From Anaeramoeba ignava BMAN (taxonomy: Eukaryota > Protista > Anaeramoebae), in NCBI GenBank assembly GCA_028826165.1, contig JAPDFW010000018.1, positions 1 through 64,000 of the forward strand: DNA of 64,000 nt. Reading direction: 5' to 3'. The notes below the pieces were generated by a model. That model was not told the DNA's origin. It did not search any database and saw only the letters and a program-made list of their open reading frames with translations. Made by a program: the position numbers and the translations under genes. The first letter of the stretch is position 1. Each line of letters opens with the position of its first letter. Positions 3,781 through 61,844 of this stretch are shown one piece after another.

Positions 3781-3864
3781 AATTTTTCTTCTTTTTCCTT
3801 TTTCCTTTTTATCCTTTTTGGATTAAAAATTTTTCCTTTTTCCTTCATTTTTCCTAAATTAAAA

Positions 3865-5571
3865 ATGAAAAGAAAAGATATTAGAATTTTTGATTTAATA
3901 CTTTTTCAAAATTCTTAAAATTCATCTTCAAAAATTAAAAACCAATCCAAATAAAATTTAAAAAGAATATCAAATTAAACAAATAATAGGAAGTGATTCA
4001 ATATTTGTTCTTTTATCAAAATGGCAAAGCAGAATATAAAAACAAATTCCAAAAAAAAAATATCAATTAAAAATGAAAAGATTGAAAAGATATCAACAGG
4101 AAACAAAATCATATCAATTCTAACAAATGAAAAAAAAGTTTATTTATCAGGAAATATCATCACTAAATCAGAAAAACAATCTCAAAATGAATTTATCAAT
4201 ATTTCCAAAAAGAATTGAAGATCCTGAAGATCAAAAATGTGAATGATGTGATTTGTGGAGCTTTTTCAGTTTATTTATTAACCTCAAAAGGAAATGTTTA
4301 TGGAATTGGAGAAAAATGGATTTGGACAACTTGGAAATAATTTAAATGATCAAAAACAAGCAATTTTAATGATGAAAGATGTTTCTAAAGTTTTTACAGG
4401 AAATTCATCAAGTCATGTTTTTATTTTGAATTCAAAAAGAGTTGTTTGGATGGGAATAATAGCTATGGTCAACTTGGATTAGATACATCAATTCAAAAAT
4501 TAGTGAACTTACAAAACTTAAAAATATTCCTAAAAGGCAAAATAATTGATATTCAATGTGGAAATGCTCATTCAATAATGTTAATTTCAGAGAAGATGGA
4601 AAAAGAAGAGTTTATTCATGTGGAAATTCAATATCTAATGGATTTTATAATTGTGGTGATATTAATTTTTACTTTGATTAGATCACCTTTTACTTGATAA
4701 TTTAAATATTGATAGAATTTCAAGTGGGAAAGGACATAGTTTGATATTAACATCAAAAGGGAAACTTTTTGCATTTGGGAAAAATGATTTTGGGCAGTTG
4801 GGAATTGGGAATAAAAAGAATAAGATTTATCCAGTTGAAATTGAAACTGATAATTTCTGGCTTAATGTTTCTAATTATGATATTGGATGTGGATATGAAA
4901 CATCATTTCTTCATTATTCTTTGATTTCAAATTTAAATGAAGATTTTGTTAATTTTTAGAAATGGAGAGTTTAGTGATTATTGTTTTTGTAACTAAAAGA
5001 TCAGAAGAGGATTCCAGTTCATGATATTATTTTGAGATATAGAATTGGTTCGAGAAATATCACTAATCTTAAATTATTAATTCAAAGTAAAGATGAAAAA
5101 GAAGCAAAAGAAATATTGGAAATGATTTATGGGAATTATGATATTGATATTGATTCAAAACAAGAAATGAAGAGATATAAATTTTGGAAAGAAGGATTAA
5201 AATGAAGCAATGAAGAGAATGTATTATGATAAAGAAAAGCAAAAAGATTTCACTATCAAAAGAGGTAATAAGAATGTTCTAGTTCATAAATTAGTTTTGA
5301 TAGCAAGAAGTGAATTATATCGAGGAATGTTTTTATCTGTGACTGAAGATAAATCAAATAAAGTTACAGATTATAGTGAATTAAGTGATGAAGCTTTTTG
5401 AAATTTTTGATTTATTATTTATATACAAATGAAATTAAAGATAATGATTTAAATTGACAAAAAGAGATTATAAATGAATTAGAAATAGCAATGGATTATT
5501 TTCAATTAAATGAATCTGTACCTAATTTAGTTACAATTGCTAATGAATTACATAATCAAAAATATAAATAA
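3865..5571 (+). CDS. RCC1-repeat + BTB protein, frameshifted
   Basis: RCC1 motifs GQLG and FGKNDFGQLG; BTB VHKLVLIARSELYRGMFLSVTEDKSNKVTDYSELS, nearly identical to the paralog at 62240-64000. Confidence 0.75.
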
Positions 5572-5589
5572 ATCAACTTAAATTTATTT

Positions 5590-7260
5590 TTCAATTTTAA
5601 TTAATAAATATATTAATAATAAATAATAAATATATTAAATTTAATAATAAATATAATAAATATATTAATAATAAATATAATAAATATATTAATAATAAAT
5701 ATAATAAATATATTAATAATAAATATAATAAATATATTAATAATAAATAATAAATATAATAAATAATAAATATAATAAATATATATTAATAATAAATATA
5801 ATAAATATATTAATAATAAATATAATAAAATATATTAATAATAAATATATTAAAATATATTAATAATAAAATAAATATAATAAATATATTAATAATAAAT
5901 ATAATAAATATAATAAATAATAATAAAATATATAATAAATAATAAATAAAAAAAGTGGAACAAAATATATTAAATAATAAATATATTAAATATAATAAAT
6001 TGGAATAATAAAAAAAAAAATGGAAAAAATAATAATAATAAAAAAACATAATAAATCATAAATATAATAAAAAATATTAATAATAAAATATATTAATAAA
6101 TATATAAATAATAAATAATAAAAAATAACAAAAATAAATATAATAATAAAAATTAATAATAAATATATTAAATATATAAATTAATAAAATATAATAAATA
6201 TTAATAAAAAAAAAAGTGGAATAAATATAATAAATATAATATTAAAATATAATAAATATAAAATAAATAATAAACATAATGAACATAATAAAAATAAACA
6301 AATAAATATAATCAATAAATATATTAATAATAAAATATAATAAAAATATAATAAAATAATAATAATAAATAATAAAAAAATATATTATTAAATAATAAAA
6401 ATGGTGGAAATAAAAGAATCAATTGATTCATTTAAATTAAAAAGTGGAATAAAATATAATTAATAAAAATTTAAATAAATATAAAAAGTGGAATAAACAT
6501 AATAAATATATTAACAATAAACATAATAAAATATAACAAAAATAAATATAAAAAAAAGTGGAATAAATATATATATTAATAATAAACATAAATAAATATA
6601 TATTAATAAAAATAATAATAAAATTAAATATAAATAAATATAATAAATATAATAATAAACATATTAATAATAAAAAACAAACAAACAAAATTGGAATAAA
6701 CATAATCAATAATAAATATAACAATAATAAATAACAATAAATAAATATAAATAAACATTAATAAATATAAATTAATAATAAATATAATAAATATATTAAT
6801 AAATATAATAAAATAATAAATAAAATAAATATATTAAATAAAATATCAACAATAAATATAATAAAAATATTAACAATAAATATAATAAATATATTAATAA
6901 TAAATATAATAAATAAAATAAATATAAATATAATAAATAAATTAATAAAATATATAATAAATATAATAAAAAATATAATAAATATATTAATAAATATTTA
7001 ATAAATAAAATATAATAAATATATTAATAATAAATATAATAAATATATTAATAATAAATATAATAAATATATTAATAATAAATATAATAAATATATTAAT
7101 AATAAATATAATAAATATATTAATAATAAATATAATTAATATATTAATAATAAATATAATAAATATATTAATAATAAATATAATAAATATATTAATAATA
7201 AATATAATAAATATATTAATAATAAATATAATAAATATATTAATAATAAATATAATAAAT
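5590..7260. repeat. 21-bp AT-only minisatellite (aataaatataataaatatatt)n, degenerate in the middle; resumes at 10462-10815 after the transposon
   Basis: Perfect 21-bp periodicity at 5640-5740 and 7010-7260. Confidence 0.9.
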
Positions 7261-10893: not shown

Positions 10894-10966
10894 CTCCCGA
10901 GGCCGGGCTCGAACCGACGACATTTGGATTAAGAGTCCAACGCTCTACCGACTGAGCTACACGGGA
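10894..10966 (-). tRNA. tRNA-Lys(CTT)
   Basis: Reverse complement TCCCGTGTAGCTCAGTCGGTAGAGCGTTGGACTCTTAATCCAAATGTCGTCGGTTCGAGCCCGGCCTCGGGAG folds as a cloverleaf; anticodon arm TTGGA-CT CTT AA-TCCAA; GTTCGA T-loop. Confidence 0.95.
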
Positions 10967-19279: not shown

Positions 19280-20125
19280 TTTAATAAATTATTTATATTT
19301 TATTTCTATTTTATATTGAAATTAAATTTTATTTGATTAAATTATTATTTTTGATTATTTATTCTTTTTATTTTGAAATTAAATAATTTTAATAAAAATA
19401 TTTAATTAAATTTAATAATTTTGAATAATAAATTATTTATATTTTATTTCTATTTTATATTGAAATTAAATTTTATTTGATTAAAATTATTTTAAATATT
19501 TTCTTTTTATTTTGAAATTTATTTTTATTCTTTTTAAATTTAATTTTTAAAATTTAAATTTCTATTTTTAATTTTTAATAAAAATATTTTTGATTTTATT
19601 TTTAAATTTAAATAATTTTGAATAATATTATTTATATTTCATTTATATTTTATATTGAAATTATTTTATTTGATTTATTATTTTTTAATTATTTATTCTT
19701 TTTTATTTTTGAAATTAAATAATTTTAATAAAAATATTTAATTTTAATAATTTAAAAAAATATATTTTATATTTTATTTTATTTTATATTTAAATTAAAT
19801 TTTATTTGATTAAATTATTATTTTTTTATTTATTTTTTATTTTGAAATTAAATAATTTTAATAAAAAATTTAATTAAATTTAATAATTTTGAATAATAAA
19901 TTATTTATATTTCATTTCTATTTTATATTGAAATTAAATTTTATTTGATTAAATTATTATTTTTAATTATTTATTCTTTTTATTTTGAAATTAAATAATT
20001 TTAATAAAAATATTTAATTAAATTTAATAATTTTGAATAATAAATTATTTATATTTCATTTATATTTTATATTTAAATTAAATTTTATTTGATTAAATTA
20101 TTATTTTTGATTATTTATTCTTTTT
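19280..20125. repeat. Degenerate AT-rich tandem repeat, unit ~134-144 bp, ~6 copies
   Basis: Anchor ttatatt(g/t)aaatta recurs at 19311, 19455, 19650, 19784, 19923 and 20067. Confidence 0.75.
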
Positions 20126-20164
20126 AGAAGTTTTGAAAAAGAAAAATAAAAAGAAATTTGAATT

Positions 20165-36355: not shown

Positions 36356-38139
36356 ATGCAACAACAACAACAACAACAACAAACACAACAACAACAAATA
36401 CAACAACAACAAATACAAATAGTTCCAAACACAAGATTTGAAGAACTTCCAGAACCAATTCAAAAACATTTCCTTCAATTTGAGTAAATAATTTTAATAA
36501 TAAATTTAATAATAAATTTAATAATAAATTTAATAATTAATTTAATAATAATTTTAATAATAAATTTAATAATAAATTTAATAATAATTTAATAATAATT
36601 TTAATAATAATTTTAATAATAAATTTAATAATAAATTTAATAATAATTTTTAATAATAATTTAATAATAAATTTAATAATAAATTTAATAATAAATTTAA
36701 TAATAATTTTAATAATAATTTTAATAATAATTTTAATAATAATTTTAATAATAATTATAATAATAATTTTAATAATAATTTTAATAATAATTTTAATAAT
36801 AATTTTAATAATAATTTTAATAATAATTTTAATAATAAATTTTAATAATAATTTTAATAATAATTTTAAATAATAATTTTAATAATAATTTTTAATAATA
36901 ATTTTAATAATAATTTTAATAATAAATATAATAATAATTTTAATAATAATTTTAATAAATTTAATAATAAATTTAATAATAATTTTAATAATAAATTTAA
37001 TAATAAATTTAATAATAAATTTAATAATAAATTTAATATTAATTTTAATAATAATTTTATTAATAATAAATTTAATAATAATTTTAATAATAATTTTAAT
37101 AATAATTTTAATAATAAATTTAATAATAATTTTAATAATAATTTTAATAATAATTTTAATAATAATTTTAATAATAATTTTAATAATAATTTTAATAATA
37201 ATTTTAATAATAATTTTAATAATAATTTTAATAATAATTTTAATAATAATTTTTAATAATAATTTTTAATAATAATTTTTAATAATAATTTTAATAATAA
37301 ATATAATAATAAATTTAATAATTAATTTAATAATTAATTTAATAATTAATTTAATAATAAATTTAATAATAATTTTAATAATAAATTTAATAATAATTTT
37401 ATTAATAATTTTATTAATAATTTAATAATAAATTTAAATTTTTAGACAAGAATTAGAAAAACAAAAAGAAACACGAATCGAAGTAGCAACAAAAGAATTA
37501 AAAGAAACAGTTGAACAAATCGAGAAGTTTGAAGAATCGATGGAGAATCTTGGGAATGCCTACAACAAAGATAGCGTAATAGTAAATCAAATAAAAAAAG
37601 AAAACCAACAACAAGCATATGAAACAGAAGAAGCAAACCGACTTTTAGAAACATTAAAAAACTCAAGTTATCGAGAAGAACCCAGTCAATTATCGCCATA
37701 TTTTGAAAAGCTTCTCGAAAAAATACAGTCAAAAATGGTTGAATATAATACAATTATTGAAGATATTGAATCATTTATATCGTCAAATTCTCAGCAACCT
37801 TTCGAACAGTTCCTCGCCCAACAAACCCTCCCAAATCCTGATTCAAAAACAAATGCGAGAGTAGTCAATCCCCCGAAAGTGATCCATGATACCATTCATT
37901 CTCAGTATCAAAAATTCATGGAACTTGTTGGCAAAATTTCCTTTATTCATGAGCAAGTTGACATTCTTCGCGAAGAGTTTTTGCGTATTTTTCGTCATGT
38001 TTTCCCAAATTCTCCTAATCCTCTTGATCAACCTGATCAGGATGATGTTGAAAATAGGGCTGTTCCTCGTTTTATTAATCTTGATCAAGACAATTCTCCA
38101 AATCTGATCCAAATTTTACCCAATTCTCAATTCAATTAA
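36356..38139 (+). CDS. Nup58/Nup49-like nucleoporin coiled-coil protein (exons 36356-36483, 37446-38139; 273 aa)
   Basis: TRFEELPEPIQK and FMELVGKISFIHEQVDILREEFL..NP resemble the Nup58/Nup49 helical region; GT-AG intron keeps the frame. Confidence 0.6.
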
Positions 38140-38334
38140 AATTAAAATTAAAATTAAAATTAAATTTTACATTTTAAATTTATAACTTTATAAAACAATT
38201 TTTTTTGGTGTTGTTTGTTAATAATATTTTTCTTTACTTCTAAAAATAGAAACAAACAATTCTTCCTTTTTTTTGTTTATTTATTCTTTTCCTTCTTCTT
38301 TTTCTTCAATCAATTCTTTTCAAAAATAAAACAA

Positions 38335-39665
38335 TTATTAAAATTAATTATTATCAACAGTACTATTTCTTAAAGATTATAAGTCCAATCTGGATAAATT
38401 TCTTTTAGCATTAGGTTCAGTTTCTAAAAAATAATGTTAAAAGGGATTTATTCAGATTGGCATCCCTTTTTTAATTTATTTAATTTCTTTCCGAAAATAA
38501 GGGAATTATTAAAATTAATTATTATCAACAGCACTATTTCTTAAAGATTATAAGTCCAATCTGAATAAATTTCTTTTAACATTAGGTTCAGTTTCTAAAA
38601 AATAATGTTAAAAGGGATTTATTCAGATTGGCATCCCTTTTTTAATTTATTTAATTTCTTTCCGAAAATAAGGGAATTATTAATATCAACTATTATCAAC
38701 AGTACTATTTCTTTAAAGATTATAAGTCCAATCTGGATAAATTTCTTTTAACATTAGGTTCAGTTTCTAAAAAATAATGTTAAAAGGGATTTATTCAGAT
38801 TGGCATCCCTTTTTTTTATTTATTTAATTTCTTTCCGAAAATAAGGGAATTATTAAAATTAATTATTATCAACAGTACTATTTCTTAAAAGATTGTAAGT
38901 CCAATCTGGATAAATTTCTTTTAACATTAGGTTCAGTTTCTAAAAAATAATGTTAAAAGGGATTTATTCAGATTGGCATCCCTTTTTTTATTTATTTAAT
39001 TTCTTTCCGAAAATAAGGGAATTATTAATATCAACTATTATCAACAGTACTATTTCTTAAAGATTATAAGTCCAATCTGGATAAATTTCTTTTAACATTA
39101 GGTTCAGTTTCTAAAAAATAATGTTAAAAGGGATTTATTCAGATTGGCATCCCTTTTTTTTATTTATTTAATTTCTTTCCGAAAATAAGGGAATTATTAA
39201 AATCAACTATTATCAACAGTACTATTTCTTAAAAGATTATAAGTCCAATCTGAATAAATTTCTTTTAACATTAGGTTCAGTTTCTAAAAAATAATGTTAA
39301 AAGGGATTTATTCAGATTGGCATCCCTTTTTTTAATTTATTTAATTTCTTTCCGAAAATAAGGGAATTATTAAAATTAATTATTATCAACAGCACTATTT
39401 CTTAAAAGATTGTAAGTCCAATCTGAATAAATTTCTTTTAACATTAGGTTCAGTTTCTAAAAAATAATGTTAAAAGGGATTTATTCAGATTGGCATTCCT
39501 TTTTTTAATTTATTTAATTTCTTTCCGAAAATAAGGGAATTATTAATATTAATTATTATCAACAGCACTATTTCCTTTTTCTCAAGTCCAATCTGAATAA
39601 ATTTCTTTTAACATTAGGTTCAGTTTCTAGTAAAAATAATGTTAAAAGGAGTTTGTTCAGATTGG
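38335..39665 (+). ncRNA. Tandem array of 8 x ~172-bp units, each with a 76-78-nt hairpin (29-bp stem); putative structured small-RNA cluster
   Basis: Hairpins start at 38385, 38556, 38728, 38901, 39072, 39245, 39418 and 39588; CCAATCTGAATAAATTTCTTTTAACATTA pairs with TAATGTTAAAAGGGATTTATTCAGATTGG. The repeat is certain; RNA function is inferred from G-U-only deviations. Confidence 0.6.
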
Positions 39666-39854
39666 CGTTTTTGTTTTCTTTTTTTTGTTTTTATTTTTTG
39701 ATTTATAATTTTATAATTTTACTTAAATAAACACAAAATTAAAAAGTTTCATCAATTTTTGTTTTTTTTTTCTTTTCATCAAAAAAAATTTTTTTTTCAA
39801 TTTTTGATCATTTCATTTTCTTATTCAACAAAAGACCCCAAAAAAAAAACAAAA

Positions 39855-42800
39855 ATGAATTTAAAAATCAATAAGATAACAATAATAACAATAATAATAC
39901 AATTAATAATAATATCAAGTTTAATAAAAGGAATTAAAAGTGATGCAACAACTTGTCAAAATAAATATGAACAAGAAATATTTGGTGGAACAGAAGAAGG
40001 ATTAGAAATGGTATTTTTAGCAACAGGAAAAGATATACCAAAAGATTTAGGAGATTACGATTTATGTAATATGCTTCCAGATGCACATCATTGTGTAATT
40101 ACTTTTGGATTTAATATAAGTGGATATGTTATTCCTTTAACTTGGGGATTTTGTTTACCTAAAGAATGTAATGAAGAATATGCACCTTATGCTCTTGAAG
40201 TTTATATTTCTTTATTTTATTCATATGCTTCTGTTGCTGATTATCCTATTGATGTTTATTGTTCTGATACTTTTAAGAAAAATTATTCAGTTGGAACTAT
40301 AATTACTTTAATTATTATTATTCTTTTTGGATCTTTTGCTATTATTGGAACTATTTTTAAATATTTTAATATTTCTCCAAATTCACAAAATCAATTAAAA
40401 TTTAAACAAAATCAACAAAATTTCCTTAATATAAAAGATAATGAAATACAAAAAGAAACTATTCCAAAATGGAAAACTATTTTATTCAAATTTTTCAGTT
40501 TTTATTCATTACAAGTAAATTGGAAAAAACTAATTGAAAAACATCCAGATCCAAGTTTTAAACATTTAAATGGAATTCGAGCTCTTTCAATGTTTTGGAT
40601 TATTTTTGGTATTTTATTTAAATAATCAAATAATAAAATAACTAAATAATCAATTAATTAAATAATTAAATAATTAAATAATAAAATAATTAAATAATTA
40701 ATTAATAAAATAATAAAATAATTAAATAATTAAATAATCAAATAATAAAATAATAAAATAATTAAAATAATTAAATAATTAAATAATTAAATAATAAAAT
40801 AATTAAATAATTAAATAATAAAATAATCAATTAATCAAATAATAAAATAATAAAATAATTAAATAATAAAATAATAAAATAATTAAATAATCAATTAATA
40901 AAATAATAAAATAATAAAATAATAAAATAATCAATTAATCAAATAATAAAATAATTAAATAATCAAATAATAAAATAATCAAATAATAAAATAAATAAAA
41001 TAATAAAATAATAAAATAATTAAATAACTAAATAATTAAATGATAAAAATAATTAAATAATAAAATAATTAAATAATTAAATAATTAAATAATAAAATAA
41101 TCAAATAATCAAATAATCAAATAATCAAATAATCAAATAATCAAATAATAAAATAATCAAACAATAAAAATAATTAAATAATAAAATAATCAAATAATTA
41201 AATATTTAAATAATTAAATAATAAAATAATTAAATAATAAAATAATCAAATAATCAAATAATATAATAATGAAATAATCAAATAATTAAATAATCAAATA
41301 ATAAAATAATAAAATAATCAAATAATATAATAATGAAATAATCAAATAATTAAATAACTAAATAATAAAATAATAAAATAATCAAATAATCAAATAATCA
41401 AATAATCAAATAATCAAATAATGAAATAATAAAATAAAGGACACACTGTTTATATTCAAAGAGGAATTGGATATAATAATGAATTATATATATATGGAGA
41501 TAAAGCGCAAATTAGTAAATGGCCATTCCAGTTTATTTTAGGAGCAGAATTTGCAGTAGATACATTTTTTTTCTTAAGTGGACTTTTAATGGCACATTTC
41601 GCTATTGAAAAACTTCAACAACATAAATTTAATATTGGTTGTTTTTATTTCCATCGGTAATTTTATTTATTTCAAACATTTTAAATCAAATCAAATATCA
41701 AATTAAATTAAATCAAATTAAATTAAATCAAATCAAATTAAATCAAATTAAATCAAATCAAATATCAAAATTAAATATTAAATCAAATATCAAATCAAAT
41801 ATCAAATCAAATATCAAATCAAATATCAAATTAAATATCAAATCAAATTAAATCAAATCAAATATTAAATCAAATCAAATCAAATCAAATTAAATTAAAT
41901 TAAATATCAAATTAAATATCAAATTAAATTAAATTAAATTAAATTAAATTAAATATCAAATATCAAATATTAAATTTAATTAAAAGATTTTGGAGACTTC
42001 TTCCTTCACTTGGATTTATAATTCTTTTTTTTACTAATATTACAATGCTTTTGGGTAATGGTCCAATTTTTGGAGGACTTAAAGATTTTATTCATGATAC
42101 ATGTGGAAAACATTGGTATTCAAGTCTTTTATTTTTTAATAATTTTTATCCAAAAGATTTTGATGATGAATGCATAAGTAATTATTTATTTGGAAATAAA
42201 TTGGAATAAATTAGGAATAAATTGAAAATAAAATTGAAAATGAAATAAATTAGGTTGGGTTTGGTATCTTGCTAATGACAGCTCAATTCTTTGTTATAAG
42301 TCCAATTTTCTTTTATTCATTTTATTTAATGCCTTTATTTGGATTTTTAGTTGTTCTTGCTTTTATAATTACTTCTGTTGTTTTAAATTTTTGGATTGTT
42401 CATCATTGGAATATTGTTTATTATACATTTGGATCAACAGAAGAAGATTATTCAAACAAAATTTATACCAAACCATACACAAGAATTCTTCCATATCTTG
42501 CTGGATGTTTAATTGCAATGCTTTTGAATATTTTACAAAAAGTTAAAAAATCAAATGAAATTTACAAACATAATATTAATATTAATGATAAAGATAATAA
42601 TGATAAAATTGAAAAAGAAATTGATACAGATAGTGAAAATGAAGATAATCAAAAATTAACAGAAAAAACACAATTAATTGAAAGTGAAAATGAAAATTAT
42701 AGAAAACAAAGAGATTGGAAAATTCAAATTATTTTTGATTATATTATTCCAATTTCAATTTTTGTTGTTAGTTTTATTTTAATACTTGTTATGGTATTTG

Positions 42801-43689: not shown

Positions 43690-46600
43690 ATGAATTTAAA
43701 AATCAATAAGATAACAATAATAACAATAATAATACAATTAATAATAATATCAAGTTTAATAAAAGGAATTAAAAGTGATGCAACAACTTGTCAAAATAAA
43801 TATGAACAAGAAATATTTGGTGGAACAGAAGAAGGATTAGAAATGGTATTTTTAGCAACAGGAAAAGATATACCAACAGATTTAGGAGATTACGATTTAT
43901 GTAATATGCTTCCAGATGCACATCATTGTGTAATTACATTTGGATTTAATATAAGTGGATATGTTATTCCTTTAACTTGGGGATTTTGTTTACCTAAAGA
44001 ATGTAATGAAGAATATGCACCTTATGCTCTTGAAGTTTATATTTCTCTATTTTATTCATATGCTTCTGTTGCTGATTATCCTATTGATGTTTATTGTTCT
44101 GATACTTTTAAAAAAAATTATTCAGCTGGAACTATAATTACTTTAATCATTATTGTTCTTTTTGGATCTTTTGTTATTATTGGAACTATTTTTAAATATT
44201 TCAATATTTCTCCAAATTCACAAAATCAATTAAAATTTAAACAAAATCAACAAAATTTCCTTAATATAAAAGATAATGAAATACAAAAAGAAACTATTCC
44301 AAAATGGAAAACCATTTTATTCAAATTTTTCAGTTTTTATTCATTACAAGTAAATTGGAAAAAATTAATTGAAAAACATCCAGATCCAAGTTTTAAACAT
44401 TTAAATGGAATTCGAGCTCTTTCAATGTTTTGGATTATTTTTGGTATTTTATTTAAATAATTAAATAATAAAATAATAAAATAATCAATTAATCAAATAA
44501 TAAAATAATTAAATAATAAAATAATAAAATAATTAAATAACTAAATAATCAAATAATCAAATAATTAAATAATAAAATAATTAAATAATAAAATAATAAA
44601 ATAATTAAATAATTAAATAATAAAAATAATAAAATAATTAAATAATAAAATAATTAAATAATAAAATCAAATAATCAAATAATAAAATAATCAAATAATC
44701 AAATAATTAAATAATAAAATAATAAAATAATAAAATAATAAAATAATTAAATAATAAATAATAAAAATAATAAAATAATCAATTAAAAAAATAATAAAAT
44801 AATTAAATAATAAAATAATAAAATAATAAAATAATCAAATAATAAAATAATCAAATAATTAAATAATAAAATAATAAAATAATTAAATAATAAAATAATA
44901 AAATAATAAAATAATAAAATAATAAAATAATTAAATAATCAAATAATAAAATAATCAAATAATTAAATAATAAAATAATTAAATAATAAAATAATTAAAT
45001 AATATAATAATAAAATAATGTTAATAAAATAATTAAATAATCAAATAATAAAATAATCAAAATAATAAAATAATTAAATAATCAAATAATAAAATAAAGG
45101 ACACACTGTTTATATTCCAGTGGGAGTTGGATATAATAATGAAGCATATGTATTTGGAGATAATGGACAAATTAGTAAATGGCCATTCCAGTTTATTTTA
45201 GGAGCAGAATTTGCAGTAGATACATTTTTTTTCTTAAGTGGACTTTTAATGGCACATTTTGCTATTGAAAAACTTCAACAACATAAATTTAATATTGGTT
45301 GTTTTTATTTCCATCGGTAATTTTATTTATTTCAAACATTTTAAATCAAATCAAATATCAAAATTAAATTAAATTAAATTAAATCAAATTAAATTAAATC
45401 AAATTAAATTAAATTAAATTAAATATCAAATTAAATTAAATCAAATCAAATAAATCAAAATCAAATCAAAATCAAATCAAAAAATCAAATATCAAATCAA
45501 ATCAAATTAAATCAAATCAAATTAAATCAAATATCAAATATCAAAAATTTTCAAAATCAAATAAAGATTTTAAATAAAATTTTCAAATCAAATTCTTCCT
45601 TCACTTGGATTTATAATTCTTTTTTTTACTAATATTACAATGCTTTTGGGTAATGGCCCAGTTTTTGGTTCTATGAAAGATTTTATTCATGATACATGTG
45701 GAAAACATTGGTATTCAAGTCTTTTATTTTTTAATAATTTTTATCCAAAAGAATTTGATGATGAATGCATAAGTAATTATTTATTTAGGAATAAATTTGA
45801 AATAAAATTGGAAATAAATTGGAAATAAAATTGGAAATAAAATTGAAAATAAATTGAAAATAAATTGAAAATAAATTTGGAATAAATTTGAAATAAAATT
45901 GGAAATAAAATTGAAAATGAAATAAATTAGGTTGGGTTTGGTATCTTGCTAATGATACTCAATTCTTTGTTATAAGTCCAATTTTCTTTTATTCATTTTA
46001 TTTAATGCCTTTATTTGGATTTTTAGTTGTTCTTGCTTTTATAATTACTTCTGTTGTTTTAAATTTTTGGATTGTTCATCATTGGAATATTGTTTATTAT
46101 ACATTTGGATCAACACAAGAAGATTATTCAAACAAAATTTATACCAAACCATACACAAGAATTCTTCCATATCTTGCTGGATGTTTAATTGCAATGCTTT
46201 TGAATATTTTACAAAAAGTTAAAAAATCAAATGAAATTTACAAAAATAATATTAATATTAATGATAAAGATAATAATGATAATAAAGATAAAGATAAAGA
46301 TAAAGATAATAATGATAAAATTGAAAAAGAAATGGATACAGATAGTGAAAATGAAGATAATCAAAAATTAACAGAAAAAACACAATTAATTGAAAGTGAA
46401 AATGAAAATTATAGAAAACAAAGAGATTGGAAAATTCAAATTATTTTTGATTATATTATTCCAATTTCAATTTTTGTTGTTAGTTTTGTTTTAATACTTG
46501 TTATGGTATTTGTTCCATATGATAATTATAAACATATGGGAACAAAATGGACAGTAGGTGAAAGTGCAATATATATTGGATTTTCTAAACTTATTTGGGG

Positions 46601-47432: not shown

Positions 47433-50400
47433 ATGAATTTAAAAATCAATAAGATAACAATAATAACAATAATAATACAATTAATAATAATATCAAGTTT
47501 AATAAAAGGAATTAAAAGTGATGCAACAACTTGTCAAAATAAATATGAACAAGAAATATTTGGTGGAACAGAAGAAGGATTAGAAATGGTATTTTTAGCA
47601 ACAGGAAAAGATATACCAACAGATTTAGGAGATTACGATTTATGTAATATGCTTCCAGATGCACATCATTGTGTAATTACATTTGGATTTAATATAAGTG
47701 GATATGTTATTCCTTTAACTTGGGGATTTTGTTTACCTAAAGAATGTAATGAAGAATATGCACCTTATGCTCTTGAAGTTTATATTTCTCTATTTTATTC
47801 ATATGCTTCTGTTGCTGATTATCCTATTGATGTTTATTGTTCTGATACTTTTAAAAAAAATTATTCAGCTGGAACTATAATTACTTTAATTATTATTGTT
47901 CTTTTTGGATCTTTTGTTATTATTGGAACTATTTTTAAATATTTCAATATTTCTCCAAATTCACAAAATCAATTAAAATTTAAACAAAATCAACAAAATT
48001 TCCTTAATATACAAGATAATGAAATACAAAAAGAAACTATTCCAAAATGGAAAACTATTTTATTCAAATTTTTCAGTTTTTATTCATTACAAATAAATTG
48101 GAAAAAATTAATTGAAAAACATCCAGATCCAAGTTTTAAACATTTAAATGGAATTCGAGCTCTTTCAATGTTTTGGATTATTTTTGGTATTTTATTTAAA
48201 TAATCAATTAATCAATTAATAAAATAATCAATTAATCAAATAATAAAATAATAAAATAATAAAATAATTAAATAATCAAATAAATAACTAAATAATCAAA
48301 TAATAAAATAATTAAATAATAAAATAATCAAATAATTAAATAATAAAATAATCAAATAATTAAATAATTAAATAATAAAATAATCAAATAATAAAATAAT
48401 TAAATAATAAAATAATTAAATAATCAAATAATCAAATAATCAAATAATTAAATAATCAATTAATCAAATAATCAAATAATTAAATAATAAAATAATAAAA
48501 TAATAAAATAATAAAATAATTAAATAATATAATAATAAAATAATAAAATAATCAATTAATAAAATAATAAAATAATTAAATAATAAAATAATAAAATAAT
48601 TAAATAATCAAATAATAAAATAATTAAATAATAAATTAATAAAATAATTAAATAATCAAATAATCAAATAATAAAATAATAAAATAATTAAATAATAAAA
48701 TAATTAAATAATCAAATAATAAAATAAAGGACACACTATTTATTTTCCAGCGGGAGTTGGATATAATAATGAAGCATATGTATTTGGAGATAATGGACAA
48801 ATTACCAAATGGCCATTCCAGTTTATTTTAGGAGCAGAATTTGCAGTAGATACATTTTTTTTCTTAAGTGGACTTTTAATGGCACATTTTGCTATTGAAA
48901 AACTTCAACATAATTTTAATATTGGTTGTTTTTATTTCCATCGGTAATTTTATTTATTTCAAACATTTTAAATCAAATCATATCAAATCAAATATCAAAA
49001 TTAAATCAAATATCAAATTAAATTAAATTAAATATCAAATTAAATTAAATTAAATTAAATTAAATTAAATCAAAAATTTTTAAATTTCCATCAAATATCA
49101 AATTTAAATTAAATCAAAATTAAATTTCAAATCAAATATCAAATATCAAAATTAAATTAAATCAAAATCAAATCAAAATTTTAAATCAAATCAAATATCA
49201 AATATCAAATTAAATTAAATCAAATCAAATCAAATTAAATCAAATCAAATCAAATCAAATATTAAATCAAATCAAATATCAAATTTAATTAAAAGATTTT
49301 GGAGACTTCTTCCTTCACTTGGATTTATAATTCTTTTTTTTACTAATATTACAATGCTTTTGGGTAATGGCCCAGTTTTTGGTTCTATGAAAGATTTTAT
49401 TCATGATACATGTGGAAAACATTGGTATTCAAGTCTTTTATTTTTTAATAATTTTTATCCAAAAGAATTTGATGATGAATGCATGGGTAATTAATTATTT
49501 GGGAATAAATTGGAAATAAAATTGGAAATAAAATTGAAAATAAATTGAAAATAAATTGGAAATAAATTGGAAATAAATTGAAAATAAATTGAAAATAAAT
49601 TGAAAATAAATTGAAAATAAATTTGGAATAAATTTGAAATAAAATTGGAAATAAAATTGAAAATGAAATAAATTAGGTTGGGTTTGGTATCTTGCTAATG
49701 ATACTCAATTCTTTGTTATAAGTCCTATTTTCTTTTATTCATTTTATTTAATGCCTTTATTTGGATTTTTAGTTGTTCTTGTTTTTATAATTACTTCTGT
49801 TGTTTTAAATTTTTGGATTGTTCATCATTGGAATATTGTTTATTATACATTTGGATCAACAAAAGATAATTACTCAAACAAAATTTACATCAAACCATAC
49901 ACAAGAATTCTTCCATATCTTGCTGGATGTTTAATTGCAATGCTTTTGAATATTTTACAAAAAGTTAAAAAATCAAATGAAATTTACAAAAATAATATTA
50001 ATATTAATGATAAAGATAATAATGATAATAAAGATAAAGATAATGATAAAGATAATAATGATAATATTGAAAAAGAAATTGATACAGATAGTGAAAATGA
50101 AGATAATCAAAAATTAACAGAAAAAACACAATTAATTGAAAGTGAAAATGAAAATTATAGAAAACAAAGAGATTGGAAAATTCAAATTATTTTTGATTAT
50201 ATTATTCCAATTTCAATTTTTGTTGTTAGTTTTGTTTTAATACTTGTTATGGTATTTGTTCCATATGATAATTATAAACATATGGGAACAAAATGGACAG
50301 TAGGTGAAAGTGCAATATATATTGGATTTTCTAAATTTATTTGGGGACTTTCAGTTGGAGGAATTGTATTTGTTTATTCATATTATGAAGCACCAAAATG

Positions 50401-53759: not shown

Positions 53760-53785
53760 TTTGAAAAGAAAAAGAAAAAAATGAA

Positions 53786-54705
53786 AAATTTAAAATAGAA
53801 ATTAATAATAATTTATTTATAATTTATTTTAAAATTATATCAAAATATTTAATAAATTGATTAATACTTTAATATTCATTATTCCAAAATTTATATTTTA
53901 TTTATTAAATATTTTAATTTATTTTATTTCAAAATTTAAAATAGAAATTAATAATAATTTATTTATAATTTATTTTAAAATTATATCAAAATATTTAATA
54001 AATTGATTAATGCTTTAATATTTATTATTCCAAAATTTATATTTTATTTATTAAATATTTTAATTTATTTTATTTTAAAATTTAAAATAGAAATTAATAA
54101 TAATTTATTTATAATTTATTTTAAAATTATATCAAAATATTTAATAAATTGATTAATACCTTAATATTTATTATTCCAAAATTTATATTTTATTTATTAA
54201 ATATTTTAATTTATTTTATTTTAAAATTTAAAATAAAAATTAATAATAATTTATTTATAATTCATTTTAAAATTATATCAAAATATTTAATAAATTGATT
54301 AATGCTTTATTATTTATTATTTCAAAATTTATATTTTATTTATTAAATATTTTAATTTATTTTATTTCAAAATTTAAAATAGAAATTAATAATAATTTAT
54401 TTATAATTTATTTTAAAATTATATCAAAATATTTAATAAATTGATTAATGCTTTATTATTTATTATTTCAAAATTTATATTTTATTTATTAAAATATTTT
54501 AATTTATTTTATTTCAAAATTTAAAATAGAAATTAATAATAATTTATTTATAATTTATTTTAAAATTATATCAAAATATTTAATAAATTGATTAATACCT
54601 TAATATTTATTATTTCAAAATTTATATTTTATTTATAAAATATTTTAATTTATTTTATTTTAAAATTTAAAATAGAAATTAATAATAATTTATTTATAAT
54701 TTATG
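53786..54705. repeat. 146-bp AT-rich tandem repeat, ~6 copies; recurs at ~58250-58670 upstream of the second receptor copy
   Basis: Anchor ta(g/a)aaatt at 53796, 53942, 54088, 54234, 54380, 54527 and 54673. Confidence 0.85.
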
Positions 54706-55109: not shown

Positions 55110-57842
55110 ATGAAATCAATTCTTTTCTTTTTCTTAATTATCAATATTTTCTTAATTCAATCAATTCAAACTCATCAAAAATTAATTTCATTATCATCAA
55201 TAAAAGAAACAGAAACAAAAATTCAAACAGAAACAACAAAATATTATTCTTCTCTAAATTCAGCTTGGATTTGGGGTTTATTAGAAGAATTTACAGGTTC
55301 ATCAAGATATTTTGGATATTCTACTGCAATTTATAAAAATGTTCTTGTTATTGGAGCTTATGATGTTAATCAAACATTTATTTATAGATATAATGGAACA
55401 AATTTTAATCTTGAACAAATTTTAACCAATATTTCAGTTTCAAGTTTTGGTTATAGAGTTGCAGTTTATGAAGATGTTATTGTTGTTGGAACTTATAATG
55501 AAAAACAAGCATTTATTTACAGATATAATGAAGGAAATTGGAATCTTGAACAAATTTTGAGTGAATCAGCTACATATTTTGGAATTAGTGTTTCAATTTA
55601 TGAGAATGTTACTGTTGTTGGAGCTTATGCTTCGAATCAAGCATTTATTTACAGATATAATGGAATAAATTGGAATCTTGAACAAAATTTCAATGAATCT
55701 TCCGCTATAAGTTTTGGGCATTCAGTTTCAGTTTATAAAAATGTTCTTGTTATTGGAGCTTATCAAGCAAATCAAACATTTATTTACAGATATAATGAAG
55801 GAAATTGGAATCTTGAACAAATTTTGAATGAATCAGCTTTAAATTTTGGAATTAGTGTTTCAATTTATGAAGATGTTATTGTTGTTGGAGCTTCTCAAGC
55901 AAGGCAAGCATTTATTTACAGATATAATGGATCAATTTGGAATTTTGAACAAAATTTCAATGAACCTTCAGTTTCTAATTTTGGAAGAACTGTTTCAATT
56001 TATGAAGATGTTATTGTTATTGGAACTTATCTTGCAAATCAAGCCTTAGGTTATAGATATAATGGAACATATTGGAATCTTGAAAAAAATTTTACTGAAT
56101 CAGGAACTACAAATTTTGGATGGCCTGTTTCAATTTATGGAAATATGACTGCTATTGGAACTTTTGGTGATAATCAAACATTTGTTTACAAAGTTGATTT
56201 TATTCCTCAAGTTAATATTATTAATTGTTCATCTTTATTTTTATCATTTGATTGTTATTGGGATAAAATTGAATCTCCCTTAACTTTGAAATATCAAATT
56301 AATTATGGTTTTGATTGGATTGATATTGATTCTCCAATTCTTGAAGATGTGAATGTTTATTATCAACAATTTAATTCTTCAATTTATGATAATATTACTG
56401 GAAATGAATATTATTCAATTCAAATCAAAGCTTGTGATTCAAATTCAATAAAATGTGGTGAATCTTCTTCTTTTATTAATTTAACAACAAAAATTGATTC
56501 TGTAAAAGATTTTCATTTATCAAATCCTTCAAATTATTCAATTAATATTACATGGAATCCTCCAAATGTTCAAATCAATGAAGGAATTGCTCATCTTGAT
56601 CATTATAATATTTCTTATTTCATTCAATCTCAACCTGATTTAATATCTTTCATTTCAGTTGATAATTCTTCAATTTCTTATTTTTTGAATAATTTAGAAT
56701 GTGAAAAAGATTATAATATTTCAATTTGTGGATGTAGAACACAAGAATGTGAAGGAGATGATAAAGGAGAAGTTATTGAATTACCAATTTTAATAAGTTT
56801 TGGAGAAGTTTCAAATATTTCATGTTCAATTTCATATTCATTAGATATTAATTGTAGTTGGAATTCAATTAATAATTGTCCAATTCCATTTTATTATAAT
56901 TTTACTTATCAATCAATTTCTCAAAATGATTCAAGAAATTATCAACCAACATCAACAAATCAACAATTCACAGCTCAAATTCCAAATCAAGAATATCAAA
57001 TCAATATATCAGCATGTAATTCAAATGATAAATGTGGAGATATTTCAACAATTTCAATTACAACAGATAATTTACCAATAGCTCCAACAATTTATGAAAT
57101 AATTTCTAAAATTGAAGAAATTGAATTTCATTTTATCAAATTAACAAATGCAAATAATTATTCAATTTCAGTTGATAATGGAACAAATTGGCAAAAATTT
57201 ACATTACTTGAATTTAATGGAATTCAAGTAATTGGAATCATAAATGGATTATCAGGAAATGTTGAATATAATATTTCAATTCGAGGATGTTCAGATTTAA
57301 ATTGTGAAACACCATATTTAGGAGAACCAAGTTCAATTAATTCAACAAAAGCTAAATTAGGAAATATTACTTCATTAAATTGTATATCATTAATTAATGG
57401 ATTTATTTGTACTTGGGATTCATTAATTTTATCAAGTGGATTAAAAGGATATTCATTTACTTATAATTCAACTTACAATTCAACATCAATTTGTTTAACA
57501 AATTTACAAGAACCTTATTATTCAATTACAGAATTAAAATCAGAAGAATATTATGAAATTTCAATTTATTCATCAGCTGATTTAAATTGTTCGAATAATG
57601 AATATTCAGGAATTAATTCAACAACATCAATTACAACATCATCTTCTTGTGAATCATGTGAACCATGTCAAAAAAGTGATAATTCAAGCAATACAACAGC
57701 AATAACTATTGGAATAATTGTTCCTATTATTGTTATTTCAACAATTATTATTGGAATTATTTTATATAAAAATAAAAAAAGAAAAAATCCAACTATTCAA
57801 ACTAAAGAAGAACAAGAACTTCAAGATGATTTAGATATTTAA
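55110..57842 (+). CDS. Type I membrane protein: signal peptide, 7-bladed FG-GAP-like beta-propeller, FN3-like stalk, TM helix, short tail (copy 1)
   Basis: Seven FGxSV(S/A)xY..V(I/V)GA..Q.FIYRYN..WNLE repeats; FN3-like ITWNPP..HYNISY..L..Y.ISI; TM AITIGIIVPIIVISTIIIGIILY. Confidence 0.85.
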   Translation: MKSILFFFLIINIFLIQSIQTHQKLISLSSIKETETKIQTETTKYYSSLNSAWIWGLLEEFTGSSRYFGYSTAIYKNVLVIGAYDVNQTFIYRYNGTNFNLEQILTNISVSSFGYRVAVYEDVIVVGTYNEKQAFIYRYNEGNWNLEQILSESATYFGISVSIYENVTVVGAYASNQAFIYRYNGINWNLEQNFNESSAISFGHSVSVYKNVLVIGAYQANQTFIYRYNEGNWNLEQILNESALNFGISVSIYEDVIVVGASQARQAFIYRYNGSIWNFEQNFNEPSVSNFGRTVSIYEDVIVIGTYLANQALGYRYNGTYWNLEKNFTESGTTNFGWPVSIYGNMTAIGTFGDNQTFVYKVDFIPQVNIINCSSLFLSFDCYWDKIESPLTLKYQINYGFDWIDIDSPILEDVNVYYQQFNSSIYDNITGNEYYSIQIKACDSNSIKCGESSSFINLTTKIDSVKDFHLSNPSNYSINITWNPPNVQINEGIAHLDHYNISYFIQSQPDLISFISVDNSSISYFLNNLECEKDYNISICGCRTQECEGDDKGEVIELPILISFGEVSNISCSISYSLDINCSWNSINNCPIPFYYNFTYQSISQNDSRNYQPTSTNQQFTAQIPNQEYQINISACNSNDKCGDISTISITTDNLPIAPTIYEIISKIEEIEFHFIKLTNANNYSISVDNGTNWQKFTLLEFNGIQVIGIINGLSGNVEYNISIRGCSDLNCETPYLGEPSSINSTKAKLGNITSLNCISLINGFICTWDSLILSSGLKGYSFTYNSTYNSTSICLTNLQEPYYSITELKSEEYYEISIYSSADLNCSNNEYSGINSTTSITTSSSCESCEPCQKSDNSSNTTAITIGIIVPIIVISTIIIGIILYKNKKRKNPTIQTKEEQELQDDLDI

Positions 57843-59116
57843 GTTCAGAAACCAATTTCCAATTTCCAATTTCCAATTCTTTTTTCAATTTCTTTTTTCG
57901 ATTCTTTTTCAATTCTTTTTCTTTTTCAATTCTTTTTTCAATTTCTTTTTCAATTTTTTTCAAAAATTTTCTTTTTCAATTCTTTTTCAATTTTTCATTT
58001 CAATTTTTTTTCAATTTAAAACAAAAAGAAAAATTGAAATTCAAAAATAATATTTTTAATTAAATTTAATTTTTACGATTTTGATAAAACTATTTGAAAA
58101 AAAAGAATTTTCAGATATTTCATTTAAAAACAGAAAATGAAGAAATAATTGAAATTTCATATTTTATTAAAATTTAGATTAATTCAATTTCAAAATCAAA
58201 TTGAAAAATTTCAAAAATTATTTCAAATTTCAATTAAAAATTAAATCAAATATTTAAAAAATTGATTAAAACTTTAATATTTATTATTCCAAAATTTATA
58301 TTTTTTATAAAATATTTTAATTTATTTTATTTCAAAATTTAAAATAAAATTAATAATAATTTATTTATAATTTATTTTAAAATTATATCAAAATATTTAA
58401 TAAATTGATTAAAACTTTAATATTTATTATTTCAAAATTTATATTTTATTTATAAAATATTTTAATTTATTTTATTTCAAAAATTTAAAATAGAAATTAA
58501 TAATAATTTATTTATAATTTATTTTAAAATTATATCAAAATATTTAATAAATTGATTAAAACCTTATATTATTTATTATTCCAAAATTTATATTTTATTT
58601 ATAAAATATTTTAATTTATTTTATTTTAAAATTTAAAATAGAAATTAATAATAATTTATTTATAATTTATTTTGAATTAAAATCGTTAAAAGAATTAAAA
58701 AGAAATAAGAAAGAAATTAATTAAAAAGGAAAAATAAAATTATCCACTTTTTCTTTATTAATTATTAAAAAAAATAAAAAATTTTTCATTTTTTCTTTTT
58801 TCATTCTCATTTTTTCTTTTAAAATCATTTAAAAGTTAAAATAAAAAAAATAATTTATAAGATTATATTCTTAATTTTTAAAAACAAAAATAAACACAAA
58901 ATAAATAGCTTTAAATAATTTAATTTTTGTTATTATTTTTCTTTTTAAATTATTAAAAAAATAAAAAAATAAGATTATAACTTAAAAACAAAAAAAACAA
59001 AAATAAAAACAAAAACAAAAACAAAAACAAAAACAAAAACAAAACAAAAACAAAACAAAAACAAAACAAAACAAAAACAAAACAAAACAAAAACAAAACA
59101 AAACAAAACAAAACAA

Positions 59117-61844
59117 ATGAAATCAATTCTTTTCTTTTTCTTAATTATCAATATTTTCTTAATTCAATCAATTCAAACTCATCAAAAATTAATTTCATTA
59201 TCATCAATAAAAGAAACAGAAACAGAAACAAAAATTCAAACAGAAACAACAAAATATTATTCTTCTCTAGATCCAGCTTGGATTTGGGGTTTATTAGAAG
59301 AATTTACAGGTTCATCAAGATATTTTGGATCTGCTACTGCAATTTATAAAAATGTTCTTGTTATTGGAGCTTATGATGTTAATCAAACATTTATTTACAG
59401 ATATAATGGAACAAATTTTAATCTTGAACAAATTTTAACCAATATTTCAGTTTTAAATTTTGGTTATAGAGTTGCAGTTTATGAAGATGTTATTGTTATT
59501 GGATCTTATACTGAAAAACAAGTATTTATTTACAGATATAATGAAGGAAATTGGAATCTTGAACAAATTTTGAGTGAATCAGCTACATATTTTGGAATTA
59601 GTGTTTCAATTTATGAGAATGTTACTGTTGTTGGAGCTTCTTCTTCAAATCAAGTATTTATTTACAGATATAATGGAGGAAATTGGAATCTTGAAAAACT
59701 TTTGAGTGAATCAATTCTATATTTTGGGCATTCAGTTTCAGTTTATAAAGATGTTCTTGCTATTGGAGCTTCTGCCGCAAATCAAGCATTTATTTACAGA
59801 TATAATGAAGGAAATTGGAATCTTGAACAAAATTTGAATGAATCAGCTTCATATTTTGGAATTAGTGTTTCAATTTATGAAAATGTTCTTGTTATTGGAG
59901 CTCATATTGGAAAGCAAGCATTTGTTTACAGATATAATGGATCAATTTGGAATCTTGAACAAAATTTCAATGAATCTTCACTTTCATGGTTTGGATATTC
60001 TGTTTCAATTTATGAAAGTCTTATTGTTATTGGAACTTATCTTGCAAATCAAGCCTTAGGTTATAGATATAATGGAACATATTGGAATCTTTGAAAAAAA
60101 TTTTACTGAATCAGGAACTACAAAATTTGGATGGCCTGTTTCAATTTATGGAAATATGACTGCTATTGGAACTTATGGTGGAAATCAAACATTTGTTTAC
60201 AAAGTTGATTTTATTCCTCAAGTTAATATTATTAATTGTTCATCTTTATTTTCATCATTTGATTGTTATTGGGATAAAATTGAATCTCCCTTAACTTTGA
60301 AATATCAAATTAATTATGGTTTTGATTGGATTGATATTGATTCTCCAATTCTTGAAGATGTGAATGTTTATTATCAACAATTTAATTCTTCAATTTATGA
60401 TAATATTACTGGAAATGAATATTATTCAATTCAAATCAAAGCTTGTGATTCAAATTCAATAAAATGTGGTGAATCTTCTTCTTTAATTAATTTAACAACA
60501 AAAATTGATTCTGTAAAAGATTTTCATTTATCAAATCCTTCAAATTATTCAATTAATATTACATGGAATCCTCCAAATGTTCAAATCAATGAAGGAATTG
60601 CTCATCTTGATCATTATAATATTTCTTATTTCATTCAATCTCAACCTGATTTAATATCTTTCATTTCAGTTGATAATTCTTCAATTTCTTATTTTCTAGA
60701 AAATTTAGAATGTGAAAAAGATTATAATATTTCAATTTGTGGATGTAGAACACAAGAATGTGAAGGAGATGATAAAGGAGAAGTTATTGAATTACCAATT
60801 TCAATAAGTTTTGAAGAAGTTTCAAATATTTCATGTTCAATTTCATATTCATTAGATATTAATTGTAGTTGGAATTCAATTAATAATTGTCCAATTCCAT
60901 TTTATTATAATTTTACTTATCAATCAATTTCTCAAAATGATTCAAGAAATTATCAACCAACATCAACAAATCAACAATTTACAGCTCAAATTCCAAATCA
61001 AGAATATCAAATCAATATATCAGCATGTAATTCAAATGATAAATGTGGAGATATTTCAACAATTTCAATTACAACAGATAATTTACCAATAGCTCCAACA
61101 ATTTATGAAATAATTTCTAAAATTGAAGAAATTGAATTTCATTTTATCAAATTAACAAATGCAAATAATTATTCAATTTCAGTTGATAATGGAACAAATT
61201 GGCAAAAATTTACATTACTTGAATTTAATGGAATTCAAGTAATTGGAATCATAAATGGATTATCAGGAAATGTTGAATATAATATTTCAATTCGAGGATG
61301 TTCAGATTTAAATTGTGAAACACCATATTTAGGAGAACCAAGTTCAATTAATTCAACAAAAGCTAAATTAGGAAATATTACTTCATTAAATTGTATATCA
61401 TTAATTAATGGATTTATTTGTACTTGGGATTCATTAATTTTATCAAGTGGATTAAAAGGATATTCATTTACTTATAATTCAACTTACAATTCAACATCAA
61501 TTTGTTTAACAAATTTACAATCACCTCGTTATTCAATTACAGAATTAAAATCAGAAGAATATTATGAAATTTCAATTTATTCATCAGCTGATTTAAATTG
61601 TTCGAATAATGAATATTCAGGAATTAATTCAACAACATCAATTACAACATCACCTCCTTATGAACCATGTCAAAAAAGTGATAATTCAAGCAATACAACA
61701 GCAATAACTATTGGAATAATTGTTCCTATTATTGTTATTTCAACAATTATTATTGGAATTATTTTATATAAAAATAAAAAAAGAAAAAATCCAACTATTC
61801 AAACTAAAGAAGAACAAGAACTTCAAGATGATTTAGATATTTAA
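59117..61844 (+). CDS. FG-GAP propeller/FN3 membrane protein, copy 2 (single extra T near 60091)
   Basis: Tandem paralog; ORFs 59117-60094 and 60072-61844 join if one T is removed. Confidence 0.85.

Follow-up and report, generated by a model that had tools for sequence, protein, structure and literature searches.

A single-locus array of eight fully paired hairpins in Anaeramoeba ignava as a candidate small-RNA precursor

Between two protein-coding genes of the free-living metamonad Anaeramoeba ignava, an anaerobic amoeba, lies a tandem array of eight near-identical hairpins, and the question raised by this locus is whether the hairpins fold in RNA and give rise to small RNAs, or whether they belong to one more satellite of a repeat-rich genome. 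The array was found in a 64,000-nt stretch of strain BMAN (GenBank assembly GCA_028826165.1, contig JAPDFW010000018.1, positions 1 to 64,000 of the forward strand), which is called the window below and to which all coordinates without a contig label refer. A first-pass annotation, made from the letters alone, had proposed that the array is an undescribed polycistronic small-RNA locus resembling precursors of microRNAs (pre-miRNAs) or short hairpin RNAs (shRNAs). We followed up this proposal by a computational analysis, and the polycistronic small-RNA locus is retained here as our leading hypothesis and not as a finding.

Anatomy and uniqueness of the hairpin array

The extent of the array was determined with Tandem Repeats Finder, which reported a single array at positions 38314-39666 on the + strand, with a period of 173 bp, a higher-order period of 344, 7.9 copies, and 95% matches. 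The period ranged from 171 to 173 bp, and the higher order was dimeric. The left edge is formed by a degenerate leading part-unit (38295-38380, +), which consists of spacer only and shares about 84% identity with the spacers of the full units. The unit anchors, set at the start of the 5' arm, fall at 38381, 38552, 38724, 38897, 39068, 39241, 39414, and 39584. Two spacer variants, A and B, alternate along the array, suggesting a recent dimer-wise amplification, and a 39-nt block of the spacer is invariant across units 1-7. No open reading frame (ORF) of more than 52 codons was found in the array.

The hairpins were examined by an exhaustive scan for uninterrupted stems, in which both Watson-Crick and G-U pairs were counted. 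All eight copies were found to contain an uninterrupted 29-bp stem and two to four G-U pairs each, the loop being 18 nt long in copies 1-7 and 20 nt long in copy 8, as the first-pass annotation had described in every detail. Folding with RNAfold added a closing G-C pair beyond a single bulged U, resulting in 30 pairs per hairpin. On the + strand, the hairpins are located at 38383-38461 (hairpin 1, with 30 pairs, an 18-nt loop, and four G-U pairs, of which those at stem positions 9 and 24 are copy-specific), 38554-38632 (hairpin 2, with two G-U pairs), 38726-38804, 38899-38977, and 39070-39148 (hairpins 3, 4, and 5, with three each), 39243-39321 and 39416-39494 (hairpins 6 and 7, with two each), and 39586-39666 (hairpin 8, with the 20-nt loop). 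Hairpin 8 is also the right edge of the array, and the sequence past it is unrelated to the array spacer. In no hairpin does the pairing extend past the stem. A run of six to eight T starts 7 nt after each hairpin; T runs of this kind abound throughout the genome, and little weight was given to them.

The predicted minimum free energies of the + strand hairpins ranged from -35.2 to -35.9 kcal/mol, with z-scores of -9.2 to -11.7 against dinucleotide shuffles. The same hairpins read on the - strand were predicted at -24.2 to -33.0 kcal/mol, weaker by 3 to 11 kcal/mol, with internal loops exactly at the sites of the + strand G-U pairs. No significant fold was observed in the array spacer (z of 0 to -1.5). 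All eight copies, with 30 pairs and no mismatch each, have the form expected of a Dicer substrate, namely, a stable stem-loop of about 60-100 nt whose paired duplex spans at least 21 bp.

We also examined how widely such hairpins are distributed. No other stem of at least 18 bp outside low-complexity sequence was found in the 64-kb window or in 39 kb of other loci (about 103 kb in total), and the remaining stems of that length in this sequence were low-complexity microsatellite self-pairings. A BLAST search with one unit as the query found the unit, across the full 42.8-Mb assembly, only at C20:38295-39666, and the array is thus unique in the genome. Four pattern searches with 22-28-nt pieces of the hairpin, allowing up to three mismatches, detected no array unit outside this interval, and a covariance model of the eight hairpins gave no match outside the array among the 150 of 21,693 candidates that were scored. 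The stem is flanked by AAGT and CATC, which differ from each other, and no target-site duplication is present there.

Strand bias in the variation of the stems

Every non-Watson-Crick site in the stems is G-U on the + strand and C-A on the - strand. The wobble sites listed in the first-pass annotation proved to be exact. Every copy has one at position 17, and copies 1-7 have another at position 16; position 9 is a wobble in copies 1, 3, 4, and 5, position 24 in copy 1 only, and positions 11 and 15 in copy 8. The alignment of the copies also bore out that copy 8 keeps full pairing despite three changes in its 3' arm and diverged flanks; one of these changes restores a U-A pair, and the other two create U-G pairs.

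Across the copies, 150 of 150 cells paired, with five pairs varying on one side and none varying on both. The five changes that arose within the array are the A/G variation at position 9, the change of A to G at position 24 of copy 1, and the three 3'-arm changes of copy 8, and two further U-G pairs, at stem positions 16 and 17, are ancestral. The + strand pairing is kept by all seven of these events (five within the array and two ancestral), none of which is an A-C mismatch or a transversion. In the consensus stem, a pair is kept by 32 of the 60 possible transitions and by none of the 120 possible transversions. The probability of the observed pattern by chance was p = 0.043 for five events and p = 0.012 for seven events under a model of transitions only, and it fell to p = 0.008 and p = 0.001, respectively, when the transition/transversion ratio of the spacer (5:2) was used.

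The direction of the changes was compared between the stem and the spacer. The stem changes are all purine transitions on the + strand (5:0, or 7:0 with the ancestral pair), in contrast to a purine to pyrimidine ratio of 1:4 among the spacer transitions (Fisher p = 0.048, or 0.010 with the ancestral pair). Since the stem and spacer transitions run in opposite ways, a regional strand-biased mutation does not explain the G-U pattern. Among units 1-7, variable columns accounted for 2 of 81 in the hairpin and 7 of 76 in the spacer (p = 0.09), or 17 of 92 spacer columns when the diverged junction block was included (p = 0.001). The strand bias is real, resting on five to seven independent changes, and it is suggestive, short of proof, of selection on a + strand RNA fold.

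RNA interference enzymes, related RNAs, and neighboring genes

The first-pass annotation had noted that the 76-nt size of the hairpins fits a Dicer substrate, and the genome does encode enzymes of the kind required, namely, one Drosha/Dicer-like RNase III and three Argonautes. The former, the only gene with an RNase III domain found in a family search of the genome, encodes 1180 aa with two RNase III domains and a C-terminal double-stranded RNA-binding domain (C64:834000-843000, ORF 3485-7027, +); about 600 N-terminal residues have no Pfam match. Its closest solved relatives are Drosha and then Dicers, with Drosha and Dicer matching about equally. The Argonautes are represented by three genomic loci at which a PAZ domain is followed by a Piwi domain. 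The TAA stops within these PAZ-Piwi matches fall in A+T-rich intron, indicating that the genetic code is standard. An RNA-dependent RNA polymerase (RdRP) was not detected in the genome, a result that is not evidence of absence, since the control genomes were equally silent. With no RdRP found, a self-folding hairpin would be a natural source of double-stranded RNA (dsRNA).

In a comparison with Rfam, the matches were confined to generic pre-miRNA models and stayed below threshold, with a single one on the - strand. Nothing in the array reached a gathering score, the best matches being MIR4359 (36.6 bits against 75), mir-44 (33.5 against 54), and mir-130 (27.9 against 40.6). A cluster of H/ACA or C/D small nucleolar RNAs (snoRNAs) was rejected, as the stem is uninterrupted and the sole match to a snoRNA model had E = 0.9. 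Hairpins linked to a transfer RNA (tRNA) and dependent on RNA polymerase III, as in the herpesvirus TMER type, were likewise rejected, as ARAGORN found no tRNA-like element in 37000-41000. The loop motif GGTTCAG may be seen as resembling a B box, and only partly so; no tRNA-like element or RNA polymerase III type 2 promoter was found at the array.

The closest analogue of the array is the hp-CG4068 cluster of Drosophila. This cluster consists of 20 tandem copies of a hairpin RNA, presumably on a common transcript. Its copy number evolves rapidly, with 20, 9, 14, and 10 copies in four Drosophila species, and it produces Dicer-2-dependent small interfering RNAs (siRNAs) against mus308 (PMC10317233). 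The likeness lies in near-identical, highly paired hairpins arranged head to tail at one locus, and tandem near-identical inverted-repeat units at a single locus were indeed found in A. ignava. An extended near-perfect complementarity between an arm and a target gene, which also characterizes loci of this type and reflects the usual derivation of the hairpin from its target, was not found in the genome searches with 22-28-nt pieces. Both the siRNAs and the target of hp-CG4068 have been demonstrated, whereas small RNAs from the A. ignava array are putative. Drosophila is without an RdRP, and in A. ignava none was detected by a search whose controls were silent. As the lineage of A. ignava (Metamonada) is unrelated, any likeness to hp-CG4068 would be convergent.

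The next closest systems are the polycistronic miRNA clusters that arose by tandem duplication, such as zebrafish mir-430 and primate C19MC, which have in common with the array one hairpin of about 76-80 nt per unit, a single strand, and a position near or between protein-coding genes. Canonical pre-miRNAs contain bulges, mismatches, and a defined basal junction; in contrast, the A. ignava stem is fully paired, with no pairing beyond it. The DrnB-dependent miRNAs of Dictyostelium (Amoebozoa) are similar in being independently evolved, hairpin-derived small RNAs of a unicellular eukaryote with a small RNA interference (RNAi) kit, whereas A. ignava is a metamonad. In a text search, a survey of amoebozoan miRNAs was found to make no mention of tandem or polycistronic loci and to use the word "cluster" only for clusters of reads (PMC11014262).

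The genomic setting of the array was then mapped. The G+C content of the window is 18-20%, in agreement with the 80.65% A+T published for the genome of A. ignava BMAN (PMC11550330). The array is a separate unit within a 1.7-kb spacer between two + strand genes. The upstream gene encodes a 266-aa coiled-coil protein in two exons, the junctions of which were placed by alignment of the 266-aa transcriptome protein to the window, and the ORF at 37540-38139 (+) is 100% identical to this A. ignava transcriptome protein in EukProt. The last exon lies at 37441-38139 (+) and ends with the stop codon at 38137-38139; the array begins about 160-175 nt past this stop. The only intron of the gene (about 36485-37440) is made up throughout of a 12-nt tandem repeat, AATAATTTTAAT x 79, with 93% identity.

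On the downstream side, an ATG at 39855, about 190 nt past the end of the array, opens the first copy of an acyltransferase-like gene, whose triplicated unit start and first exon occupy 39786-40625 (+). The gene is a tandem triplicate with starts near 39855, 43700, and 47440, a spacing of about 3.8 kb, and 98% identity between the first exons. The placement of the array directly upstream of a same-strand acyltransferase triplet, as given in the first-pass annotation, was thus confirmed by gene mapping on the + strand. The three copies are homologous only from about 68 nt upstream of the ATG onward, which places the hairpin array outside the triplicated unit. Directly after the first exon, the copies carry a (AAATAATA)n array of 66-102 repeats (40620-41437, 44455-45097, and 48198-48727).

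Other repeats were observed in the window and elsewhere. At 53785-54704, 58218-58673, and 19602-20126 lie satellites whose units of 144-147 bp are repeated 3-6 times at 87-97% identity; they contain no long complex hairpin. Their recurrence in the window suggests that nucleosome-sized tandem arrays are common in this genome. The segments 55327-56190 and 59340-60201 are tandem repeats with a period of about 132-135 nt (higher orders 264-402) and 76-80% identity, whose units have the look of coding sequence, probably of a repeat-domain protein that is present twice. A+T-rich satellites with units of about 135-145 bp are common to contigs C28, C93, C142, C145, and C147 (C28:7000-10500; C147:17500-20700). 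The only Rfam match in the window that reached its gathering score was a tRNA gene at 10894-10966 (-), with 66.3 bits.

A possible small-RNA precursor and its alternatives

We tentatively favor reading the locus as a non-coding array, young and amplified in place, that serves as a polycistronic precursor of + strand hairpin small RNAs, which we regard as plausible, if short of probable. The array would be transcribed on the + strand, from a start of its own or by read-through from the upstream gene, after which the genome's one Drosha/Dicer-like RNase III would excise and cut each stem-loop. A stem of 30 bp is long enough to yield a single duplex of about 21-25 nt, which would be loaded into one of the three PAZ-Piwi Argonautes, and having eight near-identical hairpins would multiply the amount made of a single small RNA. 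We favor this reading because of the full + strand fold in eight of eight copies, the pairing-preserving variation, the lower variability of the stem, the rarity of such stems, the single locus, and the presence of the enzymes; the + strand orientation of both flanking genes, the precedent of hp-CG4068, and the generic resemblance to pre-miRNAs also speak for it. It seems to us rather doubtful that the phylum Anaeramoebae has in this array its first small-RNA gene, an independently evolved, eight-fold polycistronic, shRNA-like precursor that is processed by RNase III and whose product is loaded into Argonaute.

A number of observations weigh against a small-RNA precursor. Covariation in the strict sense was not seen, as no compensatory double substitution occurs among the eight copies. 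The copies are 95-98% alike as a result of dimer-wise amplification, and the independent stem events are few for this reason. Of the selection claimed in the first-pass annotation, the bias toward G-U only on the + strand therefore stands (p of about 0.04-0.001), while true covariation is absent and the independent events are few. No homologues were found in other genomes or in metagenomes; of the metagenome scans made with each arm, the first gave no match and the second gave three unrelated matches on bacterial-looking contigs of 29-52% G+C. Orthologues of A. ignava and its only sequenced congener are 37.3% identical in amino-acid sequence (PMC11550330), a distance too great for a non-coding comparison. 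In addition, the genome is rich in neutral-looking satellites, including those with 144-147 bp units.

Nor did the sequencing runs speak for transcription: the locus was found in no run recorded as RNA and in one public run, X1. This run was available as strandless Logan contigs (39.5 Mb), and its kind, RNA or DNA, is not on record. The upstream exon was covered by a contig with 0 differences at a depth of 51, the array by one 202-nt contig (38502-38702) at a depth of 5.8, and the downstream exon only by a contig with 10 differences at a depth of 19.5, which probably belongs to copies 2 and 3 of the acyltransferase-like gene. The run looks RNA-like, because an eight-copy repeat is found at one ninth of the single-copy depth and the variants of copy 1 are missing. 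For a strandless run of unrecorded kind, these depths would allow for long RNA from the array at a low steady-state level at most. A look-up of the upstream protein in assembled transcripts gave no match.

The search for targets was likewise unfavorable. The first-pass annotation had envisaged messenger RNA (mRNA) or transposable-element targets complementary to the arms, and no convincing one emerged from the pattern searches of the genome, in which four 22-28-nt pieces of the hairpin and, separately, the 3' arm of copy 8 were used with up to three mismatches allowed. No off-array site had one mismatch or less to the 22-mers tested. The best off-array match, and the sole one with two mismatches or fewer, at C18:12296-12317, lies in a Cdc6/Orc1-like ORF with AAA+ lid and winged-helix domains (C18:10800-13800, ORF 1191-2261, -) and agrees with the 3' arm of copy 8 at 20 of 22 positions, that is, with two mismatches, compared with three mismatches to the arms of copies 1-7. 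A duplex of the copy 8 arm and the Cdc6/Orc1-like mRNA is predicted to contain one mismatch and one G-U pair, and the similarity ends after 22-23 nt. Because four other sites match with three mismatches, a match with two mismatches is about at chance level; the Cdc6/Orc1-like ORF may be taken as the sole candidate target seen, and as a lead only. A match with three mismatches that recurred on C28, C147, and further contigs belongs to an A+T-rich satellite of about 140 bp, and the similarity does not reach beyond the match itself.

Several of these points would be expected of a neutral minisatellite, in which an inverted duplication produced the palindrome, unequal crossing-over amplified the unit, and the G-U-only pattern arose by chance among young copies. 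We consider this reading possible and take it seriously: the window contains dozens of tandem arrays, including the satellites of 144-147 bp with 87-97% identity, the alternating A and B spacers point to recent dimer-wise amplification, the independent stem events number only five to seven with none compensatory, and neither a homologue nor a target was found. What such an origin leaves to coincidence is that all five to seven stem events keep the + strand pairing (p of about 0.04 to 0.001), that they run opposite to the transitions of the spacer (Fisher p of 0.048 or 0.010), that the hairpin is less variable than the spacer, and that copy 8 retained its stem while its flanks were replaced; moreover, no comparable complex stem was found in the other satellites or in the roughly 103 kb examined. 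A structure of the + strand RNA that serves another role, either as RNase III cleavage or road-block sites by which transcription of the upstream gene is ended or insulated ahead of the acyltransferase triplet, or as a stability or localization element of a long 3' untranslated region, appears unlikely to us. The strand bias argues for an RNA fold and is silent on its purpose, and the position of the array, 160-175 nt past the upstream stop, about 190 nt before the next ATG, and on the same strand as both genes, would suit such a role, as would the run of 6-8 T that begins 7 nt after each hairpin and the drop in X1 depth from 51 in the upstream exon to 0-6 in the array. However, with 81% A+T the genome is full of T runs, the array is absent from copies 2 and 3 of the acyltransferase-like gene, and a scan for bacterial-type promoters and terminators was uninformative and reported none of the hairpins, which it misses because the loops are too long. 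To our knowledge, no tandem hairpin terminator or insulator of this sort exists for eukaryotic genes transcribed by RNA polymerase II, which also counts against this role.

The remaining two readings place the function, or the origin, of the palindrome in DNA. We give little credence to a DNA-level element, such as an array of cruciform palindromes that binds a protein or marks a hotspot of replication or recombination, or a repeat of about 172 bp that phases chromatin. A palindrome has no reason to favor G-T over A-C on one strand, and its two fixed mismatches would weaken a cruciform; the array is also confined to one locus, with a spacer that has no significant structure. These features stand against a unit length near the nucleosome repeat, a perfect inverted repeat in every unit, and the 39-nt invariant spacer block of units 1-7, all of which would be compatible with such an element. 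The inverted arms and short loop resemble those of foldback and miniature inverted-repeat transposable elements (MITEs), whose terminal arms are likewise inverted, and the unit could in principle be a remnant of such a transposon captured in a satellite. We hold this to be hardly conceivable, as no off-array copy was recovered by BLAST, by the pattern searches with up to three mismatches, or by the covariance model among the 150 of 21,693 candidates scored, and as the stem flanks AAGT and CATC form no target-site duplication. The MITE reading was rejected because the unit is confined to a single locus, in tandem, and lacks a target-site duplication, which bears out the first-pass annotation on this point.

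A look through the literature turned up no study that connects Anaeramoeba with small RNAs or with Dicer function. The small-RNA pathways of free-living metamonads are essentially unexplored, and it has yet to be settled whether hairpin-derived regulatory RNAs evolved more than once among unicellular lineages (PMC11014262). Without transcription, the array would simply add another satellite to a genome that is 81% A+T and very rich in repeats. If the small-RNA precursor that we favor is real, the array would be a known kind of locus in a lineage where none has been described, and it would constitute a genome-encoded source of dsRNA for gene regulation in a free-living metamonad that apparently is without an RdRP. 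Provided that they are processed, the eight near-identical, perfectly paired 30-bp hairpins would be an unusually clean natural substrate that shows how a minimal kit of RNase III and Argonaute measures and loads small RNAs, and they would offer a first handle on RNAi in a lineage without genetic tools.

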